Shown here: positions 32,942 to 63,654 of the stretch, one piece after another
Layout of the letters: each line of letters opens with the position of its first letter
Numbering within the stretch: the first letter of the stretch is position 1
Assembly (NCBI RefSeq): GCF_902459465.1
Contig: NC_047073.1
Coordinates: 7,316,001-7,380,000 of the forward strand
DNA: 64,000 nucleotides
Origin: Asterias rubens
Lineage: Eukaryota
Reading direction: 5' to 3'
Made by a program: the position numbers and the translations under genes
The notes under the pieces: model-generated
What the model saw: only the letters and a program-made list of their open reading frames with translations
What the model was told of the DNA's origin: nothing
Database searches by the model: none

Positions 32942-33874
32942 CTGCTTAATTACCATCATGTCATATGTACAATATGTTTAACTGGCATGCTTGCGTTTGC
33001 TTAAGAATTATTGTTAAGCATCATTCTCTGCTTAAGCAGCTCTAAGCAATCGGGCCAAGGTCCTAACGGTCACAAAATTCGCATTATTTCAAAATACCGG
33101 AGTTTGCGTCTATATACGTGATGGTCTTCAGTCGCGACTGGGGGAACCTGGGTCCCGACACACGGTAAGGTTCTACGGTATGAGCTTGCCATGAAACAAA
33201 CCTTCTCAGACATCACGTATGGGTTTCTAAATGACTTTTTCCAAAGGATAGACTTTGTGGATACCCCCAAAAGCCCCCCCCCCCCCCCCCCCCCCCCCCC
33301 CGTCTGCACCCACTCATTAGCCCTCAGTGACATACCGGAATAATTAGTGACCCCCTCCCCCTCAAAAAAAAAAATTAATAAATAAAAAATATAAAAAAAT
33401 AAGGATTTAGATATACTTGTGATGAAAATCCACCAAATCACTGGCCTAGATCCGCGTTGATAAGTTGAACAAATTTTCAATTTCAAACATTTTTGTAAAC
33501 TTTTTTTATCAGAATTGTTCAATTATAGCTTTTAAGCTATTAAAATAAGTGATCTATTGAACAAAAATTACCGTTGCAGGACGTTACAATGGTTAAAAAA
33601 GTTACCGGTTTTTGGCGCGATATGAAAAGATCTTATATTTATGGTGTCCCGGAGATACAAAATAAATGCAACTGAATTGAGCCTGGAAACTAAACACTCA
33701 TCAGACAATTTTAACTCAACTTCAAGACTGAACCTCAACCAAGTGTCAAGTTACATTAATTTAAATACCTGAAAAAAACATATATCTTGAACCACACAAT
33801 CAATCATTCAATATGTATGCATCTTCGGAGAGGTCATCCAAAATAGAAATGAAACAGACATGACACCATTTGAC

Positions 33875-33898
33875 CATGGAGCTTTTTATAGCTCCGTG
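33875..33898. mobile_element. 24-bp CAT..GTG palindrome with 7-bp TSD (P-superfamily footprint or micro-element)
   Basis: CATGGAGCTTTTTATAGCTCCGTG flanked by ATTTGAC / GTTTGAC (one mismatch). Confidence 0.7.
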
Positions 33899-34196
33899 GT
33901 TTGACCTTGACTTCTGGTCAAAACCTGAAGTTTAAGTGAAAATAATAAGTAAATACAAAAACCTTGATTTTAGCTATGTGGCCAAAGTGAAATGAAATTG
34001 TAATATGGTTTATGTGTTTCAATGTACTATAATTACCCTTTTTTCTTTTTCTTTTTCAATTAATTCAAACGGTTGCGTCATTACATACACAGCGCCCTCT
34101 GGCGACATTATTTCAAAAAGATTACCAGTTCACGAACAAAAAAATCACACAAAAAATCACATATCGAAGAAAGGTTTAGCCCAAATGTGGTAACAC

Positions 34197-34221
34197 CATA
34201 GAGAAAGGTCCCTTTTCTATG
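34197..34221. mobile_element. 25-bp CAT..ATG palindrome with 7-bp TSD
   Basis: CATAGAGAAAGGTCCCTTTTCTATG flanked by GTAACAC twice; empty paralogous site at 62685-62691. Confidence 0.85.
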
Positions 34222-35206
34222 GTAACACCATGTAATGATAATATCTAGATGAGTTGGGGGTTCTGAAAAGAACCGTTGGTTTCAACGACTGTTTTAAAAG
34301 GAGCTTTCACTGTGTGAAAGAGAGAGACGTTAAAATTGGTCACTCGTTTGCCTTAAGCTCACATGGATTAAATAATTAATGTTCACATTGCAAAGGAAAA
34401 AACTTGGATTAAAACTGGAAAGTTCAACATAGTTTCCTTTGTAAATGTAACATAACAAAAGGCCCTACTTATCAGGACCAATGACAATTGAAGACTTAAA
34501 CCCATCACTATCCAACGATTATCTTTAGGGTCAATATTGCGGTCGCATAAAGGTTGACCACAGATTATTATGAGCCTAACCCCCGTCACCGACGTCACAG
34601 ATGTCATCTTCACATGATCCCGCATGCAAACAAACTAAAACCCAAACACTAAACTGATTATAAATGCAACTCATTCATGACAAATAAATGGTTGGTCAAA
34701 TTCGAAGTTAATTTCTAAAAGTACATACGTAGCCCCAATACCTTTCATTGCAGCAACATTATGTACATGGTCCTCAAGCAACAAAAAAAAAAAAAATGAT
34801 AATAGGCCCTACATGCAACTGATTTCAGGTGTAGTTTTCTGATACAAGGGCACCACTTTATACGATGGATTCAGAAAACCAAAGTTGAACTCTTTTTTGT
34901 CGATTCTGTGCAAGTCTACAAGCTTGAATTTATTCATTTTCGCAGACTTTGTAGGATTGTGTTCAACTTATCTTATAGCACTCCGACATGAACAAATAAT
35001 ATATAAGAGATAATAAATTGAAGCTTTGCAATGGTGAGGATCAAAAGAAAAACTGTAGTTTTTAAACGTGCTGGTGTAAATACAACTCTTTTGGCTGAAG
35101 TGTTGGCTCTGGAAGTAACCGGTGGTCTCAGTATACTATTCTTATCTTCAGGAGAAAAGACAGATACTTTTCCAAAACTCGAGACCACTTTTTTGTCTCC
35201 TCCAAC

Positions 35207-35242
35207 CATGGAGGAAACTGTTTTCTTCTTTCTTCCCCTATG
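35207..35242. mobile_element. 36-bp CAT..ATG insert with 7-bp TSD
   Basis: CATGGAGGAA..TTCCCCTATG flanked by CTCCAAC twice (35200 and 35243). Confidence 0.7.
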
Positions 35243-35578
35243 CTCCAACTCCATGCTCAAACTATGGAGGCAAACCAAATCTTCGAGTCTACCAAAATAG
35301 TTTTATACATGGTTGCACCGGCAAATTGACTCTACCAGTTTCTTTTAGACGTATTGACGTTTGCCCTGCAATCCAACTATCCCCCAAATGCAAATCAGCG
35401 TTAAATCCGGAAGGCAAAGCCCTAAAACCAAATTCAAACATGGTTAGCGTCTTTAATGGTTGACAAATACAGGTATCAGGTTGGCTCTGTATAGTTTGTG
35501 TCCCTGCCATTCACCTCTGTGGACCCCGATTCGAAGAAACTGGGCCTTGCATGTGGATGAGTTTCTAGTCCCTACCTG

Positions 35579-35799
35579 GGCCCAATTTCATAGAGCTGCT
35601 AAGCACCAAAGTTTGCTTAGCATGAAATTGCTCCCTTGATAAAAACAGGATTACCAACCAAATTTCCTTTTGTTGCATATTGCTTGTTACTGGTATTCAG
35701 CTGCTGTTTGCTTATTCTGAAAATCATGTGGAAATTTGGTTGGGAAGTAATTTCATGCTAAGCAAATTTTTGTGCTAAGCAGCTCTATGAAATTGGGCC
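35579..35799. mobile_element. Harbinger-like MITE (GGCCCAATTTCATAGAGCTGCT TIR) inserted in a V-type SINE remnant
   Basis: Near-perfect TIRs; CTG/CCG flanks; rejoined flanks read GCATGTGG..CCCTAC..TGCGTGGGTTTCCTCCC. Confidence 0.8.
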
Positions 35800-36620
35800 C
35801 CGATTGCGTGGGTTTCCTCCCTCATCTGAAATATCTGGATATTTCTTTTCGTTTCTCATTAATCATGTTATTGGCGCTGGATGTGCAATAAAATAAAATA
35901 AATCAAAACCTTGGCACGATACAAACTATACAGTACGTGGCCAACCATATCAACTATGCTATTCAGTGTGGAATGTGCAAGTGTGACGTCAATGAAGCTG
36001 GTGTGTTTGTTTTGTTACCCTGGGTTACGGGGGATTCCCCATTTGCGGTTTGATTGCAAGGCTAGTCTCTGTTTGGACGATTGCATCTGTATACAATATT
36101 TGTTTCATTGGTTCCTGTTTTATGTTTCTGGATTATTCTGCCTTTCTATAAAATGTTTGTAGGGGGATGATAAGTTCTGAAGTTGCTGGAAGTGAATGTT
36201 GTTTTATGTTGTTTTGTGACATGTGACATCATCCGTTCTCAAAAGAGTCACAGAACATGGACTTCCTGCAGGCACAATTGACATACAACTCAATGGAACA
36301 CAATGGACGGAAATATTGAATATAATACCGATGGAGATCTACCCCTGTCTGTTTTTTTTTTTCAATTTTTAAAATGAATAAAAAGGAGGCACATTTCAAA
36401 ACTTGTTTCCCTATCCTTCCACCGCTTCAACCACTCTTGTCACAGCCACCAACCCCGTTACAAACTAATAAGTATAATACACATTTCGCAAAATGAACAA
36501 GGGCGATACCTAAAATCATGCTCCAACCAACAGTTCTATCCAAAACAAAATACTTTGCTCAGCGAACAAGGTGTTGGAGGTTCTGTATATTTACTCTCTG
36601 TCGTGAAAAAAAAGTGTTAA

Positions 36621-36975
36621 AGCCATTATACACTTTCGGCACAGAAAAAAAAGTTCACAGATTTACAAATAACTTACAGGGTTTACAGAAGGTAATGATG
36701 AAAGATTTCTCTTGAAATATTATTCCATGAAATGCTTTACTTTTCGAGAAAACATTTATCAATTGTCGTTGTCGAGAATTACGGATTTATTTTAAACACA
36801 TGTCATGACACGGCGAAACGTGCGGAAACAAGGGTGGGTTTTCCCCGTTATTTTCTCCCGACTCCGATGACCGATTGAGCGTAAATTTTCACAGGATTGT
36901 TATTTTTTATATCAGTTGTGATACACGAAGTGTGGGCCTTTGGACAATACTGTTTACCGAAAGTGTCCAATGGCT
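36621..36975 (-). mobile_element. Kolobok-type MITE family B
   Basis: TTAA at 36617 and 36976; inverted homologue of 15863-16234. Confidence 0.85.
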
Positions 36976-37107
36976 TTAATACACAATTTACACATTAAGT
37001 CAACTTCATTTGCAAGAACCTTCTTTCATAAAAACTAACACTTCTATAAAAAAGGGTAATACTTGGCTCAACGAAAACAGTTTTGCTCACCACTAAAATA
37101 ACATTAA

Positions 37108-37447
37108 AGGAACACGTTGACCTGGATCGGACGAGTTGGTCTGTAAAAAGCGTTTGGAACCGTTTGTTATAAAATGCATATGACGAGAAAGATGTTGTAA
37201 AAGTAGAATGCAATGATCCACAAAAATTTGCCTCAAAATTGCGTGGTTTTCCTTTTACTTTGCGAACTAACACGGTCGGCCATTCAAGGGAGTCAAAAAT
37301 TTGACTCCCATAAATGGCCGACCGTGTTAGTCGACGAGGTAAAAGGAAAACCGTGTAATTTTACAACATATTTCTAACCATATGCATTCTATAACAAACG
37401 GTTACAAACGCTTTACCAACTCGACCGATCCAAGGCAACGTGTTCCT
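37108..37447 (+). mobile_element. Kolobok-type MITE family D inserted into a ~147-bp tandem repeat (37020-37640)
   Basis: TTAA at 37104 and 37448; flanking units CATAAAACTAACACTTCTATAAAA recur at about 37028 and 37519. Confidence 0.8.
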
Positions 37448-39957
37448 TTAAACGCAATTTACACACTCATGTATGAAACCACAACCACAAAATAATGTAG
37501 TTTTGAGGTAAGTCCTCTCATAAAAACTAACACTTCTATAAAAGGGTAATAATTGGCCCAAGCAAAAAGGTTTTGCTCACCATGAAAAAAAACAATTAAT
37601 ATGCAATTTACACATTCATGTATGAAACCACAACCAGATTGTGGTTTAGGGGTTAGTCAACTGCATTATGCATGAAACCTCCCTCAATAGGACGAAAAAG
37701 AACATTGCTTTTTGTCACAGAGAAGGTGCGTTTGGCAATCACTCACGTATACATCTACAGTTATATAAGATTCCAACAATTTTAATAAAACTTTTGAATT
37801 TATTTCAAATTAAAAAAAAACACCAGACAACCAGCCACAAGTAATACACATTGCTTAATATTGGCTAGTGATCAAACAAAAACATTACGGAATCAGGTTC
37901 GTCCAGCCTGCTGGTGTAGGTAATACACAAACGAGGACAATGGGGCCTGTTGAATAAAGGTCCCCAGTTGGAGAGTGTGTACAAAACTAAAGGTTCCCAG
38001 TTGGAGAGTGTGTACACAACTAATGGGGAACTGTTGTTAAAAAGTACAAACAAAAGAAGGACAAAAGGAGGTCCCTGGTTACATAAATTTGATTGCAGGT
38101 GGTTTTCACACGACGTCTTGAGCGAAGTTTTATGAAGAACCGTGTGAAACAGCTCACATCGGCCTTATGGTTTCACTAAACAAAAAGTTGTATAAAAGAG
38201 AGTTCATATTATGGTGTGTTCATGTTTTATGTCTGACTTGGCGCTTCATATTTATACGAACAGCAAGTCATGATGCAAATAGAAGCTTCCCACATGTTGC
38301 AGCAAAGTTCCCCCTGATGGAATTTACAACATTAAAACAACAATCGCAAAGTCATAACTTCACTGTATAAATTTGCTTAATAAAGCTAACATTCCTGCTA
38401 TGGTAAGTAGGTGCTGTGTATGTTTGACTACGGATCTAGTTCGGAAGGTCGGGGCCAATCGGACGGACTTTTGAAAGATTTGGCTTGCTATCAAACACAC
38501 ACGGGACCAAGTTATTACGCCAGCTCTATCTTCAACCCCATGCGTTAGAAACCATGGAGGAAAGATGCTCAGCTGTGCCGTACACAGTTGCAACTTTTGA
38601 TATTTTTTTAAAGTGTTAGATGTTCTATTTCTACCTCCATGTTGTTACTCATTAGTTTGTCCTGTTCCACTTCTTTCATAAAGATGACATAAACAGTGGT
38701 TAACAAGTACGGTTATCTTATTCACAAATTTCATGTTGGTTTTCGGGGTTTTAATGAGCCCCTACTTCTATATTTGTCACTGTACATTTTATTACCAGAG
38801 TATACACCTGTTTTAACCCGTTTGTGTCGTGTATATAGTAGGATCCCGCATGTCAGGCCTCTGGGATGTATAGGTCATTGCTGGTAAGCAGTTTGCAAAA
38901 AACCTCAACTCAGCTTGTTTTGTTTTAGACCATATATTTTTCCAGACCAATTTAGAAATCCAAAAACAAAGAGAACACACGTGGTGAACATTCACAAGAT
39001 GCTGCAGGGAAGGGAGGGAGGGGGTTACTGTTGTGTGTTGAGGAGGGGGAATTCTCACTCATTCTCTTATAGGTCCCATGCACTTTCCCCGAAGCTTTAC
39101 CAACTTCCCCCCTCACCCCAACCTTGGCATTAACCTTCAAGTTCGCCGTGATACGGTGCCGCCAAGTCGCTGCGTACCTTGGCCTGTCACGCAAGCTGGC
39201 GCGGCCTGCGCAATTCTGCTGAAAGATTGCTTGGTCTTCAGTGACCCACTACTGCTTATCTAATCTCAGAACCATGAGACCCCCCCCCCCTCCTCCAACT
39301 TCCTCCTACCATGCTCTTACCCCTGTCCAATTTAAAGCAATATTACCGACTTTGTGTTTACATAACGAAACCGTTGCTGTCAGTGTAAGCTGACTCCACC
39401 ATATACATAAACTGGCAAACCGCCTCCTGGCTAACGAGAAAATAGTCGAAAACCGATTGAAGTCGGCTATTCAAAACTGAGGGTTGGATTTAAGAGTCCA
39501 CATCTGTGTTAACAAAAGGAGTGTGGTAATGAGCTTTCCCTGCGTACAATACTGGTCAATGTGGGAAATTGAACAAATTGTATAGTATACATTCCAAATA
39601 AATAAAAAAAATCGAAAACTAGGCTGTAAAAGTTTAGAGATGTGCCTCCTTTCTGCATGACAAAAGTGTAACTTTTGAATTTCTAAATTGTTGTGTTCTC
39701 CAAAGGGTTCAGAAGTGGCCGAATGAAGGCAAATGCTCAGTGTGGCACTCTTGTTAACATGAGTGTATGAAATATCAATCAAAAATATAACCTGTGCGAT
39801 ATTTTTCTGCCAGAAGGAAATATCACTTGTATTATGTGAAAGCAAGCAAACAAACAGCTTTGCCATTTTTATTTGAAAAACATTGGTTTTAGGCCTATGA
39901 ACAGATAATTTGCCAGTTGCGTGCATTGGATGTTTTGAATCAAAATTAAATAATTTG

Positions 39958-40345
39958 TGATACATACATACATACATACATCACACAACTAAATATTTAT
40001 AAAGCGCCTTTACATCAAGATCAAAGCGCTGGAAAGAGCAAGACCAATTGAACTATAAATACAACAAATTACATCTGATACAAGTGAGTTTTGAGAGATT
40101 TTTATTAATAAAGGCAAAGAGTTACAATTTCTGATGCGTACTGAGAGGTTGTTCCATATTCGCGGAGCAATAAAGGAGAAAGTCCGGTTGTGAGCAGATG
40201 AGAGTGTTCTGATGGTTGGGTGTTCGGTTAGGCGTGTGTTGTCAGAAGCTGATCGCAAGCTTGAGTAGAGGCGTGGCGGTTGGTAGAGAGCAAGGCAAGA
40301 TGATAAGTAGCCTGGTGCTATTCCTTGAAAACATTTAAACACAGT
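39958..40345 (-). mobile_element. 3' end of an L2/CR1-clade LINE
   Basis: C-terminal ORF2 motif FKCFQGIAPGYLSSCLALYQPPR..LRS..RTFSFIAPRIWNNL; GCGCTTT..GCGCTTTATAAAT 3' motif; (ATGT)n tail. Confidence 0.85.
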
Positions 40346-40582
40346 AACTAAAACCTTGATTCACAACACGCTCTAATTATCTCCAGATTCCTCCTTTTCC
40401 CAAATCTGACAACTATAAATCATTTACTGATAGATTAAAAATACACGAAACTACCCGTCATTTTATTTTTAAAACAAGAATTAGCGCCATTTCCATGAGT
40501 TCCCCAGCCGTGAAAACGACCTCTCGGTTCGGTCGGAAGGAGCTGAGCCCTGAAGTACCTCGGGAAGATCACGGGAGATTAA

Positions 40583-40921
40583 AGGCACTTGACACTATTG
40601 GTAATTACTCAAAATAGTTTCTAGCATATTCAATAAACAACTTATAAGGAAAAGAGAAAGAGCTGTTGAAAAAAAAAAATGATGAGAAACGGCTCCATCT
40701 GAAGTAAGATTTTGAGAAAGAGGTAATGTCTCACTCAAATATTAAACGATTTCAGGCCTGAAACCTTTTATTATGCATCTGAAAGCACCAACAAAAATGT
40801 GCAACAAAGGTGTTTTTCTTTCATTGTTCTCTTGCAACTTCGATGACCAATTAATTCTAACGTTTTCTCAGATGTGTTATTTGTTGCATTTTGACATTTA
40901 CACAAAGTTATCCGATGCCTT
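40583..40921 (-). mobile_element. Kolobok-type MITE family A
   Basis: TTAA at 40579 and 40922; homology to family A. Confidence 0.75.
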
Positions 40922-41280
40922 TTAATTACCCCATGAAGATCACGGCAGATTAAGGGAATCTCCTACCTATAGGACCTTGAACTTTGTTTACACCTTCCAG
41001 TGAGATCTTGGCAGCATACCGTGACAAATTGGGGACGCCACGAGGGCACTATCACATCCGATGCCTTATGAGTTGCAATGGGAATATCCCCCGTACGTGG
41101 TGCTCATCAGTAATAAGTGTCAATTAGCCGGCACTGCTTTGATAAACTTTGACACCCTGTCACATTTATTAATTAAGTTAATCAAACGAATTAAACTTAT
41201 TTTTATCGAGGTTACAAAAGACACTTTTCACTAAGCAGACACTTCGGGGTGCTGTGGAGAACAGGGTCTCATAGACATGC

Positions 41281-41397
41281 AAGCAGAACAAAATGCTTAA
41301 CAGTTTTAAACTAAGCAGAAATGAGCACGATACCAGTCACAAATTGTACATTATGGTAGTTTGGCTGGTAACCTATATAACACTATGGTAAGCATGA
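41281..41397 (-). mobile_element. Internal fragment of the GGCCCAATTTCAT MITE family
   Basis: Inverted homologue of 32920-33040; holds one copy of the satellite monomer precursor. Confidence 0.65.
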
Positions 41398-41484
41398 CTG
41401 GTAAAAGTGCTCGGCTATAGTTGAAACTTAATGGAGAGCGGATACACATTTAAATGTTACAAGTTTAACTTTACTATTATTTAG

Positions 41485-41731
41485 TCAAAGACCAGTATTC
41501 TCACTTGGTGTATCCAAACATGTGCATAAAATAACAAATCTGTGAAAAATTTTACTCAATATTGGTCATCGAAGTTGCATGGGAATATTGAAAGAAAAAG
41601 AACACCCTTATTGCACAACAAGATGTGTGCTTTCAGATGACTGAAAAGGCCTCAGGCCGAAGTATTTTAGTCTTTAAGTGAGAAATTACTTCTTCTCAAA
41701 ACACTGTTACGTCAGCAGAGGAGCCGTTTCC
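41485..41731 (+). mobile_element. Kolobok-type MITE family A, partial
   Basis: Homology to the family A body. Confidence 0.7.
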
Positions 41732-43984
41732 CGAAGTATGCTGTGACAAAACGGAACATGGTATCATTCATTGTGAGTTTGAGCCCGTGTGTATTGTGTG
41801 CCTCTGTTTGGCCGAGGATATTCGAAGTGCTTCCAAAAGGTCAGGATTCACCCACTATCGGTGCTGAAGAAGGAAATTAAGTTTGTTAAAAGTGTTAGTT
41901 ATCAAAAGTCAGTTTCGTTGTAATCTTAGGCAGTGATCGGTGTGCGTGCCAATGCGGTTTGTGTTTCCATCTTCTAACGTTCACTGGTCAGTGTAGTATG
42001 CCACATTGTTGACCCCCATCTCTTCTGTAGCTGTGAAATTTTGAAGTAAAAACTATCTTACGGACACTATAGTTTGAGTCATTGACAGCTAGAACAAATT
42101 ATGGATGATTTTTAATATAGGTTTTCCCGGTCAATTTAAGGGGACAAAATCATTCAATTTTACACCTGGTTCATTTTAGTTTCGTTTGGGGCTGGTCAAC
42201 CATACATTGTATCCGTTGTATGTGAAGAAATTAGTTTTCTGAAATGTGCTCTTAATTTTTAAAATGAATATGAATACTTTGTGACTATTAAGACAAAATA
42301 AATTTCCCCTATAATGTTTGTCAGTTATTTTCTTGAGTATAGGCACAAAGAAGAAGACAGTACAGTAAAATCGATCCCAGCTACTCGAGATACACGTTGA
42401 GTCTCTACAGAACATACAAATAATACATTAGTATCGAGTAAGCCGAATACATTTTGATTATGAGTGACAGTTTCTAAAAACAGATACCCAAAATGGAGAG
42501 GAAAGAAGGAGTAAGGGCGGGGGTGAGGTCGAGAGAATTTCTCAAAGATCGTGTCGCGTTTCCCAAGACGGGTGTGGAAAACAAGTCCACGCTTTGTCGA
42601 CAAAGGTCCAGGTGGAATTCCTGTCATAATTTGCTGCAAATCAAAAAAAATGAAGGGGGAAGCAGGAGAATCTGTCAAGGTGATATTTGAAAGTCCGGTT
42701 CACACTGTCTTGGATATGAGTGTAATTGAGGAGGGTTGCAAACAAGCGCTTACTTTGTCAGGATATGTCTCCTTTTTCTAAAGGGGGAGTAAAGGGGAGA
42801 AAGGAGATTTGGCAGACGTTGATGGGGCACGCTAGAACGGTTCCAGTTGCCAGGTCTCGCACGGTGCCTTCATCGGGTTGCATTCAACTGCGTCCAGGGG
42901 TGATTCCCGACCCGTTATAAAAACCCGTCGTGCTGAAAACAGGTGTGCCATTCTTCACAAACAGGACACACCTGGGGGTTGTGTTTGACGCTATCTGGGC
43001 CTGCCAGCCGCTACACCGGGCGTCCGTAGCGTGCCGAGAGCTGTTCAACCAGGTGGTTTGCAGGGCCGTCGTCTGGAGAAGGACACACGACGCCCCAAAT
43101 TCTGTCTATGGTGGAAACGGTGCTGACAGGTTCGCAATTGCAGCGGGGACTTAAACGGTTCCCTTTAGAGAGGAGGGGGATAAATACAGACATTTTCGGG
43201 TTCAGTGAAAACCAGGAGTTTATTCTATCAAAGCTCCTTTTGGAAAGATGTCCTGCCAGAACTTTTAGAATCAATCAGTGAGCAATTACGAGCAAGAACG
43301 CTTGTTGTAGTTGACTTCAAACAACCATTTTTTCAGCCAAGCACAGGGCCGTTGAGATGGGACGTCTCACCCAAGGGGTTCAAATGTCTCAGGTACTTTT
43401 TCAAAATCGATCTCTGATGATGGAAGTTTCAGTCAAGGGGGTTAGGGCAACATGCTGAGAAACGAAGGAAAAAAGAAGTGAATCTAAAAGATGTAATAAT
43501 ATTTCTTATATATTTTCTTGGAATAAAACATTATATCAGCCAGCTCGTCGAAATTACTTTAAAGTTTCTTCTCTCATGTCTACACAAAAGGTTCTTATTT
43601 CCTGAACATTTCTCTTCACCAACGAATAATGTAATAATTCTGAGAGGCAGATGCCCTTCATTTCCTCCACACCAAACTTTTTCATCTTTCAAATTAGCCC
43701 TGTCAATTAGTTACACCTGCGAAAATATGACATCCTGGGATGTTTCCCCAAATTGAATTACAAAGAAGGGAGCTGGGACATCCATGTTCTCCCATGCGGG
43801 GGTAGAAGTATGTCAGTGACCCGTAGGGCTAGAGGGGAGGGGGACGAGACAGGCAACCAAAATAGGGGTGGATCAAAAAGTGCCAAAGGCAGTCTTGAGT
43901 CCTTTTCACACTGCTTTATTTCCCGGGGTTGCCCCCATGTGAACAAAGACCGGGCTTTGCACACTGTGATATCGCTTTCGGGAA

Positions 43985-49809: not shown

Positions 49810-50360
49810 GTTGGTCAAAAATTGAGTTGAGTTAACGCATTACTTTAAGTTTGTTGGTCAAAAATGGTGTTGAGTAAACGTATTACTTTTGAAGGTTAAA
49901 AAGATTGGCAATTGGTTAAGAGAAATTGTTGCCCAACACCTTTGGTTGGCCCTAATAATAATAGTTTAAACTAATGCACTGTAAAATTGTATATAGGTCA
50001 GACATTGTGTTGAGTAAACGTATTACTTTTGAAGGTTAAAAAGATCGGCAATTGGTAAAAAGAAATTCCTGCTCAACACCTTTGAAAAAAGTTGAACAAA
50101 TTGCTGGTATTGGAATGGTCCAATGTTGGTTTGCCCTAATAATATTTTAAATGAACGGACTGCAAACTGATGGTCACAAATTGTGTTGAGTAAACGCATT
50201 ATTTTTGAAGGTTAAAAAGATTGCCAATTGGTTAAAAGAAATTTCTGCTCAACACCTTTGGACAAAGTTAAACAAGTTGTAGGTTAACTCATGGAGGTAG
50301 AATTATACCTCCATGGTTAACTGGATATGGTCCATTGTTGGTGGTTGGCCCCTAATGATA
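49810..50360. repeat. Degenerate tandem repeat, three units of about 140-180 bp
   Basis: GTGTTGAGTAAACG..TTGAAGGTTAAAAAGAT..CAACACCTTTG at about 49869, 50007 and 50183. Confidence 0.8.
50290..50315. mobile_element. 26-bp CAT..ATG palindrome with 7-bp TSD
   Basis: CATGGAGGTA-GAATTA-TACCTCCATG flanked by GTTAACT twice; absent from the preceding tandem unit (50101-50140). Confidence 0.85.
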
Positions 50361-51681
50361 TTGTCCTTGGTTTCGCAACACAATGTTGTTTTTGCTTTAT
50401 TGTTAAAATTTAACCATCTTGAAATTATAACTAGTCCCAGGCCTTAGGACCTACTGCTCTGAGAAGTTTTACAATAAAAAGAGGAACTAGGCAATTATTT
50501 GCGGCAAAACCTTCCACGTGCATATGATTATAAGCGCGAGACACTTTGCTCTGCGGCTCCATTCCTTTCAACTTCAACACGAAAGCTCTTTGAGGAAAAA
50601 ATATGTCAAAACTTCAACCTTGCAAAGTTTTCAATCTTGAAATTCAGCGGCATTAATTTGATTTAAGGCGTGTTGATAGCACGTGTTGTTCTTGTTCACA
50701 CGAGCCCCTTTTAGCAAGGGTCCCTTGCTAAATTCCTGGTTGTAAAATTTTACCATGGTGTACATGTACCTCATGTGAAAGGAAAACAAATTGCAAATTG
50801 TCTACTGCCAAGGTTCTCTTGCAAAATCTTGTTAAACATTGCTACGTTTTAAAACCGTGCTAAAAATTAAGCAAGAAACCCTAGTTTAATTGCTGTTGTG
50901 TGAATAGCATATAATAGACAACGGTTTCACAAAGGTACTGTTGCATTAAATTATTAATACAGTTTCGGCACAATCACTATCACGGGGGTTTTGCAATTAA
51001 TATTTTGCGCACACACACAAACAACAATTATGTGTAATAAAATTACTTTCAGCTTCCAGGCACTTTCTAACAAAAAACATTGTGAAATATTATCTGACCT
51101 CCCACGCAAATATCTGTACTGTACATAACGCACGTGTGCTCAAATGATTGTCTGTAAACACATAAGATTCATACCGCCCACACAAATTAATGTTAGTGAC
51201 TGAAATATTCCACACAATATGTAACAACAACAAAATAATAATCCAGGATGGAAAAAGTGAGAACCTCGCCTTCCTTCATTCGTGCCGAATGTTTTGTAAA
51301 ATACTTGTGAAAATAGTGGAGAAATGTTGGAGTTTTAATTCAAGACACTGCAAAATTTAACTATACTTCACGGGTCAAATATTTTCAATACCACGTGTAT
51401 GGTTTTAATAAAACATTGAAATGGTGGACGTTTATTCATTCCACATTATTTTTGAACCATCGGTGTTTATACTGTTATTGGGATCACAGGACCATCGGTG
51501 TACCTATACGTACATGTACTTATTGCAAAACGGGACTCCAACCGTGGCCCTCTCTCGACGCAAATTCTTACAGAATAGTGGTCATTTTTGTGCATGTATT
51601 GCAATTTTCAACTTCAAACTACCCTTCCAAACCACTGAAGTTGTGTTTTCACTTTTACTTCTCTCAATAATGCGAGTTTAA

Positions 51682-52029: not shown

Positions 52030-53339
52030 TTAAAAGGTTCAACAAATAAATAGGAAGAATTTAATTTACAAACTGCGGGCGCTCTCATTCTTCATACACG
52101 TATACTACTATAGCTTTCTAAAGTTCAAACTGCTCATGTGCCAATGTAATATAAAATTTACATCGTAGTGTTGAGCGTAGTTAATACGCTCAACACTACG
52201 ATGTTCGCTCTGGCATATAAATGGTACAGTTATAACATCAATACTCCAATTTACATTGGGCAGATAGCCAAAGCATACACACGGTGCATTACATTGCCTA
52301 CCGCCACCCGTTGAGATAAACTCCTCTGTCATGTGATGTTTACAAATATTAAATAGTAACCAACGACCATCACATGAACACATGGTGATAAAGTGAAATC
52401 TTATTTTAGTTTTTGCTCATTTTGTTTTTACTTACTGCATTTAAAACGTTTATTTAATGAAGGACCTGTGTTTTGTTTTTAGTTTGAATATATTTTATTG
52501 ATTTCATTACTCAGAATCTGGGTTTAGCAAATCGATGGGAGTTAGTTTTAACATGTGTGGATTTGTTTACTTGTTTGGTTGTTTGTTTCTGTTTATAATC
52601 AGTGTTGTCGTGCTAAAACATTTCAAGACCAGAACACAGGCTATATTTGGATATGTTATCAACCATTTCTAATTTTGTTTTACCATGATTTGTTATCAAA
52701 ATTATGGGGTGGATGTTGTATGATATAAATAAAAAGAAAATGAACCAGACTTTTTAATTATTTACAGACTAAAGAAAATATTGTATGATAGAGCAACACA
52801 CACATCGAGTCGGTTTGAGTAATGCTGAATGAAATTAGAAAATATTAGACTATTAATTGAGTTTAGTTCAGTTTTATCTTTCGGTGTGATAAACATTGTT
52901 CAAACTCATTTCGTGTGTTTTTATTTTGCAAAACGGAAGACAAAGTCACCATTCAGACCAACATGGGATTTGAAAAAAGACAACAATTACGGCAAAGGGG
53001 AAATGTGTCTCACTGATACTGTGAAAACATTTGCCGTTGACAGAAATTGGATTTATCTTTTCGGAATTTTGTACTGAATAAAATGGAAGAAGATCCAGAA
53101 AAAAATGAAAATATTTAATGAAAATAAAGAATAAAGTCCAAATGTGTCACCGACAACTCTTTTTGTGTATTAAAATATGAATTATCTCTTGCTGGTATCC
53201 GGAAACGTTTTGGCTCAAACAATTACAAGGATTAGTTTTTCTGAGACGGTTTTTCCGGGTAAAAAATTACTTGTCAAACGACGCATCAGCCCTGACACAA
53301 GTCCTGACACAATACACATGAGCGAGAGCGCACTATACA

Positions 53340-54022
53340 GCGATGTGCACGGCCCGCAATCTACACAACCAACTACGGATTGAGTCACATTGCCAAGCGC
53401 TCTTATATACCTCTCTAAAAATAGCATTCGGCTCTCCTCACCAAAACAAACCCGGACTGCAATGTGTACACACGGAAAATTTCACACGGCTAAGGCCAAG
53501 CCACACTACAGTGTTTAGCATGACATAGCATATCAGAGGTATCCCCCCTACATGAGGCTGTTAGCACGTCCGGGATTCGCCGAGTGACTTCTTTACGTCA
53601 CAGCCTGTCGATGACGTCAGATTACCACTCTGCGCTGTGATTGCATTAGAGCCTATTGTTGGACAGAGCCGCTCATGTTTTATTCATGAGCCACCGACAT
53701 CTCCATAGTCACGACGAGAGCTCCGTTCACTGCGAGTGCTCGACTACACTGAGCCGTCTAGCCGACGAGCGAGCTCTGGTTATATACGGTCTAATTTTAG
53801 ATATGCTAATGAGTCAGCGCTGAGGGCTCTGATTGGCTGTGAGCAGCTGGCATGAATGAAACAACCGGAGGAGGGTATGTGATTATATTCCAACCACCGG
53901 CGGGAGATTCCTCAGAACTCACTTGAGAGTCGTGTTTAGAAGATCATAAGAGAAAAACTATATCTGCTGTGACTGAGAATTTCTTTTTGCGAGAGAATAC
54001 GGAACAATAACTGGATAAAACA
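53340..54022 (+). promoter_or_regulatory. CpG-rich proximal promoter and 5' UTR of Klf2/4
   Basis: MEF2 sites CTAAAAATAG 53415-53424 and CTAATTTTAG 53791-53800; AP-1 TGAGTCA 53381 and 53810; CRE TGACGTCA 53612 and TTACGTCA 53593; ATGCTAAT 53803; reverse CCAAT 53832; CpG density well above the flanks. Confidence 0.7.
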
Positions 54023-54079
54023 ATGGCACAAGCACTCGGCGATATGACACAACACAGCCTTTCCAACATGTCAAATGAT
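54023..54079 (+). CDS. Klf2/4: Klf2/4-like gene, coding exon 1 (MAQALGDMTQHSLSNMSND, 19 aa)
   Basis: ATG at 54023 (context ACAATGG), 19 open codons, then donor GTAAGT at 54080; phase 0 joins in frame to exon 2. Confidence 0.75.
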
Positions 54080-55906
<1,827 letters not shown>

Positions 55907-56990
55907 ACTATATCACCATGAACATTGACATTTTTTAAAGCTAAAAATGTACATGCAAAATCTTTGATTCAATATCCCATTGGATATCAGTCATATTATT
56001 TGCTATTTGTATATTTTTTGGGTAAGTTCTCGGGGGTCGATTCTTTGATTTGTATTGATATCATCGAATTGGCTAAAACCTGATGAGCTACCGACGAAAC
56101 CCAACACAGGACGCCACGATCTGGCCCTTGGTTTGTTGGTGCAGTAAGATGGACAGGTCTCTCAATAGCCAAAAAAGGAAGAACAAAATATTCTTAAACT
56201 TCCAAATTCGATTCTGATTCGATTCTGGTTCGATTTTTGAGCGAACAACTCGAGAGATCTGGACATGGGGGTGCATGCGAGATGGGTAAACATAACATCA
56301 GAAGTGGAAATTAAAAGCTAAAACACAAATCTATTTTTTAAGTATGATATCCTTTTAAGGAACAAAAATCAAACAACGCTTGCTGAAATGGAATAGTTCA
56401 ACGTCTTAAAAACACGTTTTTTCTCAAAAGCATGTTATGTTTACTTCTGAAGTTTTGAGTTGTGTTCACTAGGAGAAATACTCTTTTATGACTTGTCTTT
56501 TTTGATATAAAGACCAGAGCTGTTTCAACAAGTGAGCACAGTACTGTGTTTTTTGAAATAAAAAAAACATTTAAATATAAAACAAAAATTGCCAAGTTGT
56601 TTACACAGCTACCGCGACGCGATAGATTCGTTGAATTTTAAAGTGCAATTGTAGTACTAGAATTTTGACTGTAAAAAAAAGGTGTACATTAGAAAACGTA
56701 TAAAGAACATCATTTTATATGGGGTGTAGAGTGCATGCCAGTTTATTTCCTTATTATTTTTTAATCAGCAGGTCTGTTCTATTATTATTAATATTATTAC
56801 AATTAAAATTGAACTAATTAACTATTATCAACTGGTAATGATTTACAATATTCTTTGCCTTTGTACCTTTGTATTAATTGTATAATTATGTACTCTAATT
56901 GATTATTGGTGATGAGATATTAATTTGGAATTAATATCATCTGTGAGAGGAGGAATTTACAGCAACTGAATAAAATGACCACAGGCTGGT
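55907..56990 (+). other. Probable Klf2/4 3' UTR with two candidate poly(A) signals
   Basis: AU-rich sequence after the stop; AATAAA at 56557-56562 and 56969-56974; true end not determinable. Confidence 0.45.
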
Positions 56991-58416
56991 CAAAATGATA
57001 TGAAATACTTGTCTGTAATAATATGTTTTGTTTATCAAGCATGGAGGTAGAAGTGATTTGAAGCTTTAATTTAAAGATGGCCGACTTCGTTCAGTCCAAA
57101 CCCCAGCCAGTACGCGCGTACATGTAAAGCCAGTAAACGTGGTATCACATACATTGTATTTGGAATATTTCGAGTTAAAAAGAAACAAACCAATATCCCT
57201 CCCGTCCCCATCAGTTCTGCCCCCCCCCCTTCTACCCACCCTGCACTCGCATTGACAGCCGACCCGGTACATACAATACAAACAAAACTTTGCAATATTA
57301 TTTGAAAGGGACCTTAAAATAATCCATAGGTGCATTGGGGGGTCACAGTACTGTGGGAAAGTACTGATTATAAAGCGCTTAAATACACATCAGTGTATAT
57401 AACGACAAACGAATCAAAGCGACCTTAACCTCCTAAATATTTAAAGCTGATTACTCAAAGCTTGGGTTGTAACTATCCATTCGCATGGGTTCCAGTGGGC
57501 CGTGAAATTGTGGACTTTAACGGGAGCTTTGATCACTCTGAAAAAAAAGCGAATTGGTTAGGTTTCGACTAAGTACATTGCATTTACTTGACAATGACCC
57601 TGTTGGATTTCCGGATACCTATGCCCTACTGAAAACATCGTTTTATTTATATGATTTTTGAAACGTACAAAAAAGAAAGATATGTTTAGCAGGTTAAAAA
57701 AAAAAATATTACTTCAGAAAAGCGAAACGTTATAACCACAGTTGGCGACACAGTTTGTATGTCGTATTTCTTCATTTTGTTTAACTTTTTTGTTATTAAT
57801 TTTGTTCAAAAATAAAATAACAACGCTAACGCTAGTTTTCTCTTACAACATACCGGGCAGAAAACCTGCAAGCAATTATTGGTAAAGATATAATTTCTAC
57901 ATCAATTAATCTACCCCAAAATATCCCAAAAATGTGACAAAATGGAAGTTGCCAATATAAAGACACCCCAAACCACCACCACAGAAAAGTAATAAGCGAT
58001 CACTGCTCATCGAAAAGTTAAATTTAGAATCTAGGCTACTATACCAAACGGAAACGAACAGAAAGTTTGTTTCCTTGTAACTTAGAGAAATGTACCAACG
58101 CCACTCAGCAACCTTAAAAACAAAGCATGTGGAAATGTACAGTTTAAAGGGATGTTGTAAAGTACAATTTAGCTTCGCTGCTGGTTTTTAAATAGGGTGA
58201 TTAGTTAGGCATCTACTGCAGACCATGTATAACCGGTGACAATTCTGACAACACATGCTTACAATAGAGCCATAGAGCCTGGACTTCCTGCAGGAATGAT
58301 TTGCACTTGAAGAAAACATGAAGTCCTACAATTTTATGGAGATTGCAGTGTCCGAATTTGATAAACTTTGGGTATGAAGAAAGGGGCCAAACATTTTGGA
58401 ATTAACTATTATACAC

Positions 58417-58860
58417 ATAATGAATGTTTATGAGTGCAATGGTGCGAATATGTTCATGAGTTGAAAGAGGGAATGTTCTATTCAACGAGGCGGAGCCGAG
58501 TTGAATGGAACATTCCAGCTTTCAACGAATGAACATATTCGCACCATTGCACGAATGAAAAACATTCATTATTTGTTTTATATAACATCCAAGTAGATCT
58601 TTGTCATTTTGATTGAAAGATACAAATTTCAAAACAATCAATTTCAACTGTAGAAGCTGAATGCTAGTAATATTTTTACTATGCCTTCTTGCAGTAACAC
58701 CTGCTGCGTTACCAAAGACACGCGCACGCAGTGATGTTTTTACTCAGCTTTTTCGTTCCATCCGAAAAGTACCATTGCACGCTGCCAGCGTGCAATGGTA
58801 CTTTTCGGATGGAACGAAAAAGCACGGTGAGTGACTCAGCGTGCAATGGTACTTTTATTT
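58417..58860. mobile_element. Foldback element without evident TSD (Crypton-like nonautonomous)
   Basis: About 70-bp inverted arms around GAGGCGGAGCCGAG (58417-58571), plus a perfect 38-bp-arm palindrome at 58747-58823. Confidence 0.55.
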
Positions 58861-60778
58861 GCTATCACGTGACGGACAATCCTCCAATCAAATGGCAAGG
58901 ATCTGCTTGGGTGTTATATAAAAATAATGATTATTCATGCCATGCATAGCTCAAACATCACTTATCTCTAAACTTGTTTACAGTTGTTACATTTATTACT
59001 CTTGTATTTATATGTAAATTATGAAACAAAATGGCTAATTTACCAGATGTGACCCGCTCCTTCGTAATGAAGAATATCGAGTAAATTTCATTTTTGAGTT
59101 TATCATAATAATCCAAACAAGCAAATCTCAAAATTTTAAAGAAATTAAAAATCATGATCATACGACGACCTTCCTGTCCGAAAAATTTTACGACCCCTTT
59201 TGAAAAAACGCCAGAAAATTAATTTTTTTTAAACGCGACGTCTCACACACTCATTACTTTAAGATGTACAAGGTCACTATCCCCATAGAGCAAGGACCGT
59301 AACTAAAGGTTACTTGAGTTTGCATACGAATGAAAGTTCGTATAGAAAGTTCGATTACATGCAGTTAATACTAAATTCCTCTATATTCAACCTTAATAAT
59401 TTCTACATGAAATGTGTAATAAAACTTGTTATTTGGGGTGGGTTTTTTCTTCTAAATAAAGCGATCCAAACGATAATTATAAAAACAAAATCCCAAAGAC
59501 AAGATACGTCTCTCCTTGCAAACTCTAAACCCAAAATGATTTTTTTTTATCTGATGTTATTTATTTGGCAAACTACAAGGAAAATACCAGCAAAAACAAA
59601 CAAAATAGATTGAACACAGCAAGAAAAGAGGAGAACACACAGAAAATTCAAAGACTTATTTTCATAGTGGTCCTCTGAGTGAAATCAACTGGGCTCAGTA
59701 GGGACAAAACAGTAACTTTGAAAGACGTACCAACAGCAAATAGTACCATTAGTGAACTCATGTGAACTCGAATGGTCCATAAAACTGCAGGATTTGGTCC
59801 ATACACCGATATCCATTTACTTGAGAATTACCGAAATATAATGTATAATGTAGTATATTCTTTCCAAGAAGTGGGTACAAATGTATGTTAAGACCAAATC
59901 TGAATTTTATGGAAATATTTGAGTTCCAATATTTGTTGTTTACAGCGAAATACAAACAATAGTACACAACGGTAAATCATTGGGGAAAATGTGGAGTTAT
60001 GCAGAACGAAAGTTACAAACCCAAAACCACTTTATATGGAAAGTATGCCATGTGGTTTCATATGAGTTCAGTGAACACACAAGCCAAACGCCGACACGTT
60101 TTGAATTCCACCAGGGTTTATAACTCAAGGACAGTGTTGTCTGTGTTTATAGCGCGACTGTTGCTATAGGGAATTCATTAGCATCCGCATCCGATATTGG
60201 TTGGGGCGACCTCTTTTCTAAGGGGGAATAACCACAATTAAAGCAAGAGTTACAACAGCAATTTCTGCGTTTTTGTGCAAGAGCTCATTGTTTGTGTGAC
60301 ATTAATATTTGTTGGAGATACATGTTGATATTATTGTGAAATTAATTGCAACAATATTGAGTTTTACTAATGTGACATCAGATGGAATTATTATTTAAAC
60401 ATTTAGGATAATTGCTAACAACTTTTCAATTTAAGCAAAATAAGAAGTTTTAATGCACCAAGATGTAATGATCAAACATAACAAATGCAAGTTCAACACA
60501 AATTATAAAGATAGAGCGATGACGTAACAGCACTTATGGGTCTACATGGCCCAACATGGATAGAGGGAGAGGGCTTGCAAATGGGAGTTTTAGAGGGAAG
60601 TTTTGACAACAGTTGGCCTTGATGATGAAGTTCTAATGGAAATATTGACTGGACTATTATTCGGTAAAGATGAAGGTAAGGCTCTTCTCCGAAACGGAAA
60701 GATATCGTCTCGGGTAACTCCCGGACATAATGCACGAATACAAAAAATCTGCAAACATTTGGGCTCATTTATTGGTCC

Positions 60779-60978
60779 TCGAAGTTATAGGAAAATAATT
60801 AAGAAACTTTTTGTTGCATAAATTTGTGTGTCTCAGATGCATAATATTAATGGCTCCGAACCTGAATTCTTTGATTGTTTGCGTAAAAAACTGCCTCTTT
60901 CTCAAAAACTACGATACTTCAGAGGGGGCTGTTTCTCATAATTTGTGTATACTATCATCAGCTCACCGTTGCTCGCTA
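60779..60978 (+). mobile_element. Kolobok-type MITE family A, internal fragment
   Basis: Homology to the family A body. Confidence 0.6.
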
Positions 60979-61783
60979 CAACATAGAAATGGTAACAGTT
61001 TTTATTTTCTTAAGCAAATCGGGATAGACTCCACACTCCGATCAGGATATCGACCTCGCTAAACCCCATTTCCGATGGAGAAAAAAACAACAAACACTTT
61101 ATTCCAGTGAAATTGCGCGTCCAGATTTCCAGATTTAATTATAGTCTTGAGAAAATTCCTCACCAACCACAGACAAGAATAGGGTTCTTGGTAAGAAAGT
61201 TAACTGCTTTATGTGTGAAAGACCCCCGGAAGAGTTAAACCACTTGAATTACTATACGACCCATTGCTTTTGTTGGGGGTTGAATGGCACTCATCAGGCT
61301 TTCCAGCATACCAAATAGGCGCTAAAGTGACAGTTTTAAGCCAGTCTCTACATCAATGGTCAGTGAAGAAGTGTTGACTCTTTTGGTGACTCTGGGGGCA
61401 CAAACAACCTTATGAAACCAGTCTACCTTGCTGTCTCTGTATTGTTCTTCGTGATTAACAATCCCCCATAGGCAAAGTCAAATAGTGAGAGCCAGTGCAC
61501 AATGGTGATTCGTTATGCATTGATTCGTGAACGAAGTGTTACAAACTATTCAACGGTTCTTGCAAGAGGCGAGAGCGTGCAACAAACACTTTTATCGTTC
61601 GTTCATGTTCCCCGAAATCCAACTTCTTGCATAACACAGGAGCATGGACTTCTTTACATGAGATACACAGTTAATGTTTACAATGTGACTATTATTTACG
61701 AAAATAGAATTAGCTGTTGCAAACTTTTTACCGACCAAAAAGTTCTGTGGTATAAATGCGGGAGAAAAGGAGTTAATGTCCTG

Positions 61784-62312
61784 CCGTCGATTTCACAAAA
61801 CTCTTCCTAACTTAAAGGCAGTGGACACTATTGGTAATTGTCAAAGAATAGCCTTCACAGTTGGTGTGTCTCGACATATGCATAAAATAACAAACCTGTG
61901 AACATTTGAGCTCAATCGATCATCGAACTTGCAAGATAATAATGAACGAAAAAACACCCTTGTCTCATGAAGTTGTGTGCGTTTAGATGGTTGATTTCGA
62001 GACCTTAAGTTCTAAATCTGAGGTCTCGAAATCAAATTCGTGGAAAATTGCTTCTTTCTCGAAAACTATGGCACTTTAGAGGGAGCCATTTCTCACGATG
62101 TTTTATACCATCAACCTCTCCCCATTACTTGTTACCAAGAAAGGTTTTATGCTAATAATTATTTTGAGTAATTACCAAAAGTGACTGCCTTTAAGACTAA
62201 TCTTAGAACTTAGGATGAGTCCCAACCCTGCACTGTAGCATGCAGACCGTAAGATTAATCCTAAGTCCTAACTCGAGATAAGATGCGTGCTTACTCTTTG
62301 TGAAATCGACGG
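61784..62312. mobile_element. Harbinger-like MITE (CCGTCGATTTCAC) hosting a Kolobok MITE
   Basis: TIR CCGTCGATTTCACAAA; CTG TSD at 61781 and 62313. Confidence 0.85.
61816..62190 (+). mobile_element. Kolobok-type MITE family A, nested
   Basis: TTAA at 61812 and 62191; host sequence CCTAAC|TTAA|GACTAATC restored on removal. Confidence 0.85.
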
Positions 62313-62672
62313 CTGACGTTTCAACCCTAGCAGAGTCTTTCTCGGCTCAGATCACCTCTTTCTCGAGTCCATCTCGAATGCTATTATTTAGGCAAACCAT
62401 ACGATGAGGTCCTGTAGCAATCCCATTTTATTGCTACGAATATAAGTGTTTATAAAGTTTGTCTCCTATATAAAAACACACAAAATATTTGTATTGATCG
62501 TCGACAGTCACATACTGTTTTTGAGGTGTATTATTCCTTTTACAAAACTGTCCCAAGGGTAAAAACAATATAATTCAGAACATCTGATCTTGGATCCTTC
62601 CCGCAAAACAGTGTGGATCCTTCAAATGCTAAGCATAATCATCAGCAGCCCTGAAGAGAGTAAAACTATATG

Positions 62673-62826
62673 GAAAGGTTTGCGATAACACCATGTAATG
62701 ACTATCTCTAAATATCTCTCCAGAAGACGATCAGAGCATACTGATGAAACGTTGAGTTGAAACCAACGGTTCTTTTCAGAACCACCCTAACTCATTTAGA
62801 GATTATGGTGATACCGCAAACCTTTC
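62673..62826. mobile_element. Penelope-like terminal repeat remnant (forward piece plus inverted copy); related copy at 34170-34290
   Basis: GAAAGGTTTGCG..CTCTAAAT mirrored by ATTTAGAG..CGCAAACCTTTC; GAAAAGAACCGTTGGTTTCAAC shared with the 34 kb copy; hammerhead-like motif. Confidence 0.5.
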
Positions 62827-63043
62827 TATATCATATTTCCACCATGCAAAGTTTCAAATCCTATCTTAGGGTAAAACTATTCGAAACGTCGATACCACAA
62901 CCCCCGCCACCACTCCTCACAAAAGAGATTTACACAAGGTTGTATCCGCAAGTTAAATTTGATATCAGTTATTTCTTTTAAATAACGTAAGTGGGGCTTT
63001 CAGTGGAATTGCACTTTCAGTGGAATTGCAAATCAGCTCAAAC

Positions 63044-63064
63044 CATGGAGGAAGAAAATCCATG
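63044..63064. mobile_element. 21-bp CATGGA..TCCATG insert with 7-bp TSD
   Basis: CATGGAGGAAGAAAATCCATG flanked by CTCAAAC twice (63037 and 63065). Confidence 0.8.
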
Positions 63065-63654
63065 CTCAAACTTAACTCAAACCACCTTACAATAGTTGCG
63101 TGTCAAACGTAGGACTTGTTTACCTGCAATCGAAACATCGGTCAGGTAAATAGTTGACCAAGCTGTGTGGATACAGGTTTGTCGACAGCCCCCCCCCCCC
63201 CCCCCCCCGTCCCAAACGAGACGTAATCCAGCACCATAAAGTTGACAATTTATGATCGATTGCAGTTTCCTTTAAAAATTACTAACTTCCATAAAAGTTA
63301 GATATAGGTTCCGGAAACCCTGATGACGGATGGTGGTACGTGTGAAATGTTTGGACTTCAAATCGCCATATTCATTTTTGTGTGAACTTGAAGCTATCCT
63401 CTTAGTTGTCTGCTGAGACTCTACTAAAGTGTCTCTACATAGATGTGTACGGGAATACAGGCCTGTATGCTTCGTTTTTGAAAGGACAAGGACACCAAGG
63501 CATTTTCCCTTTGAATTAAAGAGCACCCTGTGAGGAAATTGTATGTTTCCAGTGGGACATTGCAACTTTCAACGGCACCAAGGCAATGTCCAGGGAGGCA
63601 TGGAAGTTGCCTCCTTGAAGTATCAGGCCTTGGAATAGAAGCTTTAATTTGGCG

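Follow-up and report, generated by a model that had tools for sequence, protein, structure and literature searches.

The ends of the Drosophila P element begin with CATG. The P-element enzyme is the only transposase known to make very long terminal overhangs, of 17 nt (PMC7776569, PMC10983969), a stagger that is atypical among transposases (PMC7776569). Joining at these overhangs after excision of Drosophila P has been described, and the published junction classes are the same as those reported below (PMC2895639). Among related systems, 1360 and Galileo produce 7-bp target duplications (PMC3698922), and zebrafish Pdre2 has inverted repeats at its termini (TIRs) of 13 bp, which start with CATA (CATACCTGTCAAC; PMC10983969). 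THAP9-like genes with a Tnp_P_element domain occur in echinoderms (PMC13228809). Here we analyse a family of short palindromic inserts in 64,000 nt of Asterias rubens contig NC_047073.1 (the window), each flanked by a 7-bp direct repeat. We interpret these inserts as the fossil scars that a family of cut-and-paste DNA transposons, most probably belonging to the P superfamily, left at its donor sites, and assign this reading a probability of roughly 0.78.

Five palindromic inserts in the window

All five inserts have a common layout. They start with CAT(G/A)GAG and terminate in the approximate reverse complement, and the 7-bp target-site duplication (TSD) around them is exact in four cases and has one mismatch in the fifth. 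The features are as follows.

33868-33905: Scar 1, a 24-bp insert at 33875-33898 reading CATGGAGCT-TTTTAT-AGCTCCGTG, with flanks ATTTGAC and GTTTGAC.
34190-34228: Scar 2, a 25-bp insert at 34197-34221 reading CATAGAGAAAGG-T-CCCTTTTCTATG, with GTAACAC on both sides.
35200-35275: Scar 3 cluster, with a 36-bp insert at 35207-35242 reading CATGGAGGAAAC...CCCCTATG, flanked by two copies of CTCCAAC.
50283-50322: Scar 4, a 26-bp insert at 50290-50315 composed of CATGGAGGTAGAATTA and TACCTCCATG, with GTTAACT on both sides.
63037-63082: Scar 5, a 21-bp insert at 63044-63064 composed of CATGGAGGAAGAAAAT and CCATG, with CTCAAAC on both sides.

A first-pass annotation of this DNA had listed these five inserts with their coordinates and flanks, and all were found in the sequence as it described them. 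Scar 1 belongs to the CATGGAGC sub-family; it has one mismatch between the arms and one in the duplication, which is therefore imperfect, and its right end reads CGTG. Scar 2 belongs to the CATAGAG sub-family, and another CATG lies directly after its right GTAACAC. The Scar 3 cluster reads, in order, CTCCAAC, the 36-bp insert, CTCCAAC, TCCATG, CTCAAAC, TATGGAGG and CAAAC, and comprises one main scar and two one-sided end fragments separated by extra copies of the heptamer. The inverted repeat of the main scar is poor, and four CTC(C/A)AAC-like heptamers are clustered there. The arms of Scar 4 measure 16 nt and 10 nt and have TA in common at the joint. In Scar 5, 16 nt are joined to 6 nt, and a third CTCAAAC is present after TTAA.

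The frequency expected by chance was estimated from 200 dinucleotide-preserving shuffles of the window, with tandem arrays masked out. Four CAT..ATG inserts of 10-60 bp with exact 7-mer flanks are present, versus a shuffle mean of 0.095 and a maximum of 1. The class is thus 40-fold above shuffles, and the excess over shuffled sequence that the annotation had set as a test of its claim is borne out. Enrichment of CAT inserts is absent when the flank length in the same test is set to 5, 6, 8 or 9 bp. A relaxed scan of the window for further TSD-flanked palindromes, with one mismatch allowed, was dominated by noise and yielded nothing notable outside the CAT family. Very short scars (TSD-CATG-TSD and the like) are rare, with examples of 4, 16 and 17 bp only. 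The inserts are confirmed as real and non-random.

Insert structure in a larger sample

Public metagenome contigs were scanned with the pattern CATGGAGGWAGAA-N0-30-CCTCCATG, which permits insert lengths of 21-51 bp, and 111 loci were identified. Three assemblies of animal-like composition (36-40% GC), JACSEG01, JAAUXV01 and Ga0058701, account for 79 of these; the remaining 32 loci, on GC-rich bacterial contigs, serve as a control. JACSEG01 probably represents a related sea star and is probably transcript-derived, as judged from repeats in common with the window, intron-less host open reading frames (ORFs) and a transferrin with 77% identity to that of A. amurensis and ~60% identity to those of valvatid sea stars. 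For JAAUXV01, an animal host is suggested by an FGF-like feature match; an ankyrin match in Ga0058701 is uninformative on its host.

Perfect 7-bp duplications flank 57 of the 81 inserts in the three animal-like assemblies and none of the 32 in the bacterial control. Duplications with one mismatch were found at a further nine of the 81, which gives 66 TSD-flanked inserts. The duplicated heptamer is palindromic, with the consensus vTnnnAC across the 57 perfect cases (positions 2, 6 and 7 are T, A and C in 50, 46 and 36 of them, respectively). A tendency of the duplications toward GT-N3-AC, proposed for the window copies, is therefore recovered in the larger sample. Also identified, in L061, was the identical 26-mer of Scar 4 at a different site, with the duplication GTTCAAC. 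A 17-bp CATAGAGGTTCTCTATG insert of the CATAGAG sub-family, with a 7-bp duplication of its own, is present in contig L011 from a related sea star. Clusters of the form TSD-fragment-TSD-scar-TSD occur at window sites 3 and 5 as well as in L107 and L108, which suggests reuse of a favoured heptamer or complex repair. When viral contigs were scanned with the 17-nt terminus, a single match was returned and was taken as chance.

These observations bear on whether the inserts derive from a transposon at all, rather than being palindromes that arose by chance or templated insertions of the snap-back (fold-back) type from ordinary break repair. Snap-back insertions do occur in the window, and the two that we identified are both absent from A. 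amurensis. The first is responsible for a perfect 45-bp palindrome at 52160-52204, found in A. rubens only; the orthologous A. amurensis sequence (L113 8097-8180 versus window 52154-52204) has one arm. This palindrome results from a 29-bp A. rubens insert that repeats the neighbouring 20 nt in inverted form, lacks a target duplication and looks like snap-back templated synthesis. The other, at ~50692-50724, is a 33-bp A. rubens-only insert that contains TTAGCAAGGG, an inverted copy of the neighbouring CCCTTGCTAA, and is thus another insertion of templated, inverted sequence that postdates the split from A. amurensis. However, such copies invert the flank and yield neither a direct 7-bp repeat nor a common terminal sequence, whereas in the family described here a terminus of 13-19 nt is common across loci and genomes, together with a target consensus. 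Chance is also at odds with the 40-fold excess over shuffles. We thus regard an origin without any transposon as extremely unlikely.

The TSD-flanked inserts lack an interior: one terminal sequence is followed by a switch to its own reverse complement. The terminal sequences are CATGGAGGTAGAAAATAAA in JAAUXV, CATGGAGGTAGAATTAGAT and CATGGAGGAAGAAAAT in JACSEG, and CATGGAGGAAGAAAAACAC in Ga0058701. Arms follow the terminal consensus as far as the junction, and the middles of the 66 inserts are nested truncations of one terminal sequence, arranged head-to-head. In JAAUXV, for example, the arm pairs include 19+19, 19+18, 18+16, 16+16, 19+11 and 17+10 nt. Lengths in the three animal-like assemblies range from 22 to 39 bp where up to 51 bp was allowed, and two longer cases are composites. 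The longest arm prefix common to different inserts reaches a ceiling of 19-20 nt in JACSEG and Ga0058701; larger values in JAAUXV stem from near-identical inserts and a palindromic centre. The length retained per end is ~19-20 nt, a sharp bound, versus the 17-nt stagger of Drosophila P. A predicted upper size of about 34 bp, which had been derived from that stagger, did not hold, as inserts stop at ~38-39 bp with arms of up to ~19-20 nt, and a stagger of 17 nt is not an exact fit.

Junctions between the arms are blunt, have an overlap or microhomology of 1-2 nt, or contain a few filler bases, in one case a copy-like GTAGCAC next to the duplication GTAGTAC. Perfect palindromes of 30, 32 and 38 bp were seen, and these would be expected if two identical overhangs annealed at AT, TA and AAATTT. 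Nearly each locus has a junction of its own. There are ~57 distinct sequences among the 66 inserts (23, 24 and 10 per assembly), and what sets them apart is truncation at the centre rather than point changes. The duplications show almost no divergence, whereas most centres are 'deleted'. Thus, truncation arose together with the insert and not through later decay.

More than one terminus is represented. Sub-families include CATGGAGGT, CATGGAGGA and CATAGAG, and also CATAGATCC and CAGAGAGAAG in one genome, as anticipated by the earlier claim that several families are involved. Palindromic CA..TG inserts of 18-33 bp with other ends and perfect 7-bp duplications were identified in JAAUXV (L021, L056, L097, L109 and L111) and Ga0058701 (L090). 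JAAUXV has seven or so of these in 61 kb of contigs (CATAGATCC, CACAGACCC, CAGAGAGAAG and CAGGAAAGTTGA), and Ga0058701 has one 18-bp CAGGTGAC palindrome; CATAGACCCC is also among the other-end inserts of these two assemblies. Several transposon families seem to leave such scars.

It is the length cap, the nested truncation, the junction types and the diversity that decide between scars and mobile micro-elements. If the latter, the 21-38 bp palindromes would be transposons consisting of TIRs only (ultra-small MITEs, or miniature inverted-repeat transposable elements) that are moved by a resident transposase, with the variants as sub-families or decayed copies. Each insert does have inverted ends and a perfect 7-bp duplication, an identical 38-bp palindrome is present at five JAAUXV sites, a few other inserts recur two or three times, and no long parent was found. 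MITE families would show near-identical copies, a conserved interior and a typical length. Instead, most inserts are distinct through central truncation between almost undiverged duplications, and their lengths are continuous. Many have one arm of only 6-12 nt, which is a poor substrate for a transposase. The recurrent forms are those that would be predicted from annealing at AT, TA and AAATTT, and the five identical 38-mers are also what would be expected of the commonest joint of intact overhangs. Furthermore, a stagger of ~19 nt would release a 38-bp element without a duplex part, and P elements require internal transposase-binding sites beyond the TIR (PMC7776569). We consider mobile micro-elements unlikely. 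The first-pass preference for scars is well supported by the nested truncations, the end-joining junctions and the stop at 38-39 bp among the 66 inserts.

A different repair route, interrupted gap repair, would also leave transposon tips at the donor site. Here, synthesis on the sister copy from both ends aborts early and the ends are joined, so that only the tips of the element remain. This outcome (synthesis-dependent strand annealing followed by end joining) is common for Drosophila P{wa} (PMC2895639), and an 89-bp window segment with family ends (38553-38641, see below) could be such a product. However, this route predicts a broad tail of arm lengths extending to hundreds of bases, whereas the observed arms stop at ~19-20 nt. 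Nor was any insert found between 47 bp and 12 kb: among CATGGAGG/CCTCCATG pairs up to 12 kb apart with a 7-bp duplication, none exceeded 46 bp in ~298 kb, a small sample, and an offset control gave 0. We judge it quite improbable that aborted synthesis produced the family.

Direct end joining at the excision site would account for the inserts as follows. An element with ends CATGGAGG(T/A)AGAA... or CATAGAG... would insert at vTnnnAC heptamers and duplicate 7 bp. At excision, the transposase would cut the transferred strand at the tip of the element and the other strand ~19-20 nt inside, so that a long 3' overhang derived from the transposon end would remain on each host flank. Host end joining would then trim and fuse the two identical overhangs, either bluntly, through self-complementary AT, TA or AATT microhomology, or with filler. 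The predicted product is TSD, left-end piece, right-end piece, TSD, in the form of a short imperfect palindrome of 21-39 bp. The outermost bases of both ends, inverted and with variable central loss (19+19 to 17+10, and 16+6), are what is observed, as in a P-type footprint. The palindromic 7-bp duplication vTnnnAC and the CATG or CATA ends agree with the target and end features of the P superfamily. The label P/THAP9, which draws on ends of CATG or CATA, a 7-bp duplication and a long stagger, is plausible but unproven. Neither a parent element nor a P-type transposase was found in the window or in ~234 kb of related contigs, and the superfamily and the stagger length are thus inferences. So are the excision event itself and the P-type identity of the enzyme.

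Age of the copies and other family termini

The window contains a KLF-like ORF (54869-55906) with 100% identity to A. rubens 'Krueppel-like factor 4'. Using the KLF protein, we reached the orthologous locus of A. amurensis (L113), which has 94-95% identity over 20 kb. Contigs from two sister taxa (organisms B and C, ~2.7% and ~1.7% divergent as judged from the proportion of 31-mers held) and from a marine metagenome span sites 1, 2 and 3 and the 89-bp segment, without a gap of 20-40 bp. Scar 1 is present in the ~2.7% divergent species, where a contig (X3 record 17) covers 33411-34284 with only five gap positions; the same contig contains Scar 2. Organisms B and C both have the Scar 3 cluster (X3 record 18, X19 record 11 and X4 record 25) and the 89-bp segment (X3 record 23 and X19 record 16). 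Scars 4 and 5 are retained in the A. amurensis orthologue, the former with one G-to-A change, the latter with one G-to-T change, and both with unchanged duplications. Since the copies are common to sister species, those in the window predate the split of these species. They drift at about the background rate, and are ancient, neutral and inert.

The two other occurrences of a family terminus are listed here.

38553-38641: 89-bp segment with left end CATGGAGGAAAGA and right end TTCTACCTCCATG, of the general form CATGGAGG...CCTCCATG.
57040-57052, plus strand: solo terminus CATGGAGGTAGAA, preceded by TATCAAG.

Family termini seen are CATGGAGGTAGAA, CATGGAGGAAGAA and CATAGAG. The exact 13-mer CATGGAGGTAGAA occurs three times in the window (38629-38641 on the minus strand, 50290 and 57040), and we estimate the chance expectation for this at ~0.002. 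The flanks of the 89-bp segment, TAGAAAC and TTGTTAC, agree at only four of seven positions; the segment may have arisen from an element by internal deletion, or it may consist of two half-scars. No right-hand partner was found downstream of the terminus at 57040, which is probably what remains of one side; A. amurensis has this terminus too, with a single substitution.

Several points weigh against an excision origin. Because the pattern itself selected the metagenome loci, this sample is biased in arm substitutions and in density. Longer elements or a P-type transposase with these termini, the search for which had been proposed as a check, did not emerge: no both-ended parent with a duplication was found in the window plus ~234 kb of related contigs, a small sample of short contigs, and there was no P-type transposase ORF among the window ORFs tested or the 26 long ORFs of the related contigs. 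The long ORFs instead encode host genes (SOCS, FABP, OATP, transferrin and others) and one reverse transcriptase. The arms retain ~19-20 nt, more than the 17 nt of Drosophila P, and one perfect 38-bp palindrome occurs at five loci of a single genome, as a mobile TIR-only element would give. A comparison of sister species for empty, full-length and scar alleles, also suggested earlier, returned the scar state only, at every copy compared. Each of the five scars is found in sister Asterias species, as are the 89-bp segment and the solo end, with no orthologous empty site or full-length allele among these, and excision at these loci is thus unobserved. Other presence/absence differences of transposons were detected within the same 20 kb of A. 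rubens and A. amurensis, so this comparison could have revealed an empty site.

Sites 3 and 5 were considered as paralogous copies of one event, and this was rejected as their flanks lack homology. The only flank match in that comparison is a repeat with a histone stem-loop near sites 2 and 5. The sequence at 62763-62808 on the plus strand matches the Rfam Histone3 3' stem-loop (37.2 bits) and has no histone ORF upstream. A similar copy adjoins site 2 at 34238-34287 on the minus strand, and the bin 34210-34409 reaches a depth of up to ~197,000 in read contigs. The stem-loop copies probably belong to a very high-copy dispersed repeat.

Also present in the window are other repeats and palindromes. 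A MITE of ~230 bp at 35570-35800 has long inverted ends (GGGCCCAATTTCATAGAGCTGCTAAGCAC) and a word depth of >2 million in read contigs; many contigs skip 35600-35776. Although this very abundant family contains CATAGAG, it has no relation to the scars. Two 45-bp perfect palindromes (TTGATTTCGAGACCTCAA[A/G]TT...) at 2755-2799 and 15445-15489 have a difference that is mirrored in both arms, lack a target duplication, and sit within a dispersed repeat of ~380 bp with at least 10 copies in the window. A. amurensis alone has a 390-bp fold-back element with ends AAGGAACACGTTGCCTTGGATCG at a TTA/TAA site (L113 15986-16375, equivalent to window ~60450), relatives of which occur at window 26336-26745 and 37105-37451. 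Conversely, a 512-bp palindrome-rich segment at 58410-58921 is found in A. rubens and not in A. amurensis. Minisatellites were identified at 30930-32941 (28-bp unit, 72 copies), 12563-13430 (48-bp unit, 18 copies) and 25186-25721 (38-bp unit, 14 copies), and the CATGGTTTAYAAACCATG-type arrays at 24.9-26.0 kb have an internal palindromic structure.

Implications and comparison with known systems

The scars are without evident function, and each event adds 28-43 bp of hairpin-prone DNA. At JACSEG loci L085, L008, L061, L096 and L029 they lie outside ORFs, in flanks that resemble untranslated regions (UTRs). The contigs are mRNA-like, with uninterrupted transferrin, Na/Ca exchanger, FABP, LRR and SOCS ORFs, and such scars may be carried in expressed transcripts. 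We tentatively suggest, with somewhat less than even confidence, that fixed scars from several P-like families number in the tens of thousands in echinoderm genomes, where they would far outnumber the surviving elements and be missed by repeat annotation. The arm cap would then read out the ~19-20 nt stagger of an extinct or uncharacterised transposase, and the scars would be a distinct source of small palindromic insertions near genes, in UTR-like flanks.

If the scar reading is correct, short palindromes with 7-bp flanking repeats can serve as usable fossils of cut-and-paste activity in genomes from which the elements have vanished. The scars would date past mobility, here to before the split of A. 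rubens and A. amurensis, and would provide both a target preference (vTnnnAC) and an estimate of the enzyme's cleavage stagger. They would also explain small indels that are missed by repeat annotation and could be mistaken for regulatory hairpins or micro-MITEs. This would help annotation and the reconstruction of transposon activity that is now extinct. The biology extends known P-element repair to wild echinoderm genomes, and the mechanism itself is not new.

Footprints of other cut-and-paste elements also offer a comparison. What Tc1/mariner and hAT elements leave behind is 2-5 nt of their own sequence or P-nucleotides derived from the flank. On the scar reading, the sea-star inserts are likewise residues of excision between duplicated copies of the target, but they keep 6-20 nt of each transposon end. 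A characteristic length, usually at least 80 bp, and a conserved interior are typical of MITE families. Sea-star inserts resemble MITEs in being short, non-coding and numerous, with inverted ends and target duplications, but they have no interior and their length is continuous from 21 to 39 bp.

To our knowledge, scars of the 1360/Hoppel, Galileo and Pdre2 families have not been described as a genomic class. The sea-star family has the 7-bp duplication in common with 1360/Hoppel and Galileo (PMC3698922), and Pdre2 has 13-bp TIRs, the first 13 nt of the sea-star terminus being the portion that is identical in three window copies. In contrast to these three families, with which sequence similarity stops at CAT, the sea-star termini are linked to no transposase gene.

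A close likeness is to footprints of Drosophila P, which have the same order of TSD, left-end piece, right-end piece and TSD, and CATG ends (PMC2895639, PMC7776569). Variable asymmetric trimming and blunt, microhomology and templated-filler junctions are also common to both. The sea-star duplication is 7 bp rather than the 8 bp of P, and ~19-20 nt rather than 17 nt is kept per end. Unlike laboratory revertants of Drosophila P, the sea-star scars, left by what is presumed to be a P-like enzyme, are fixed, ancient, germ-line and numerous in wild echinoderm genomes.

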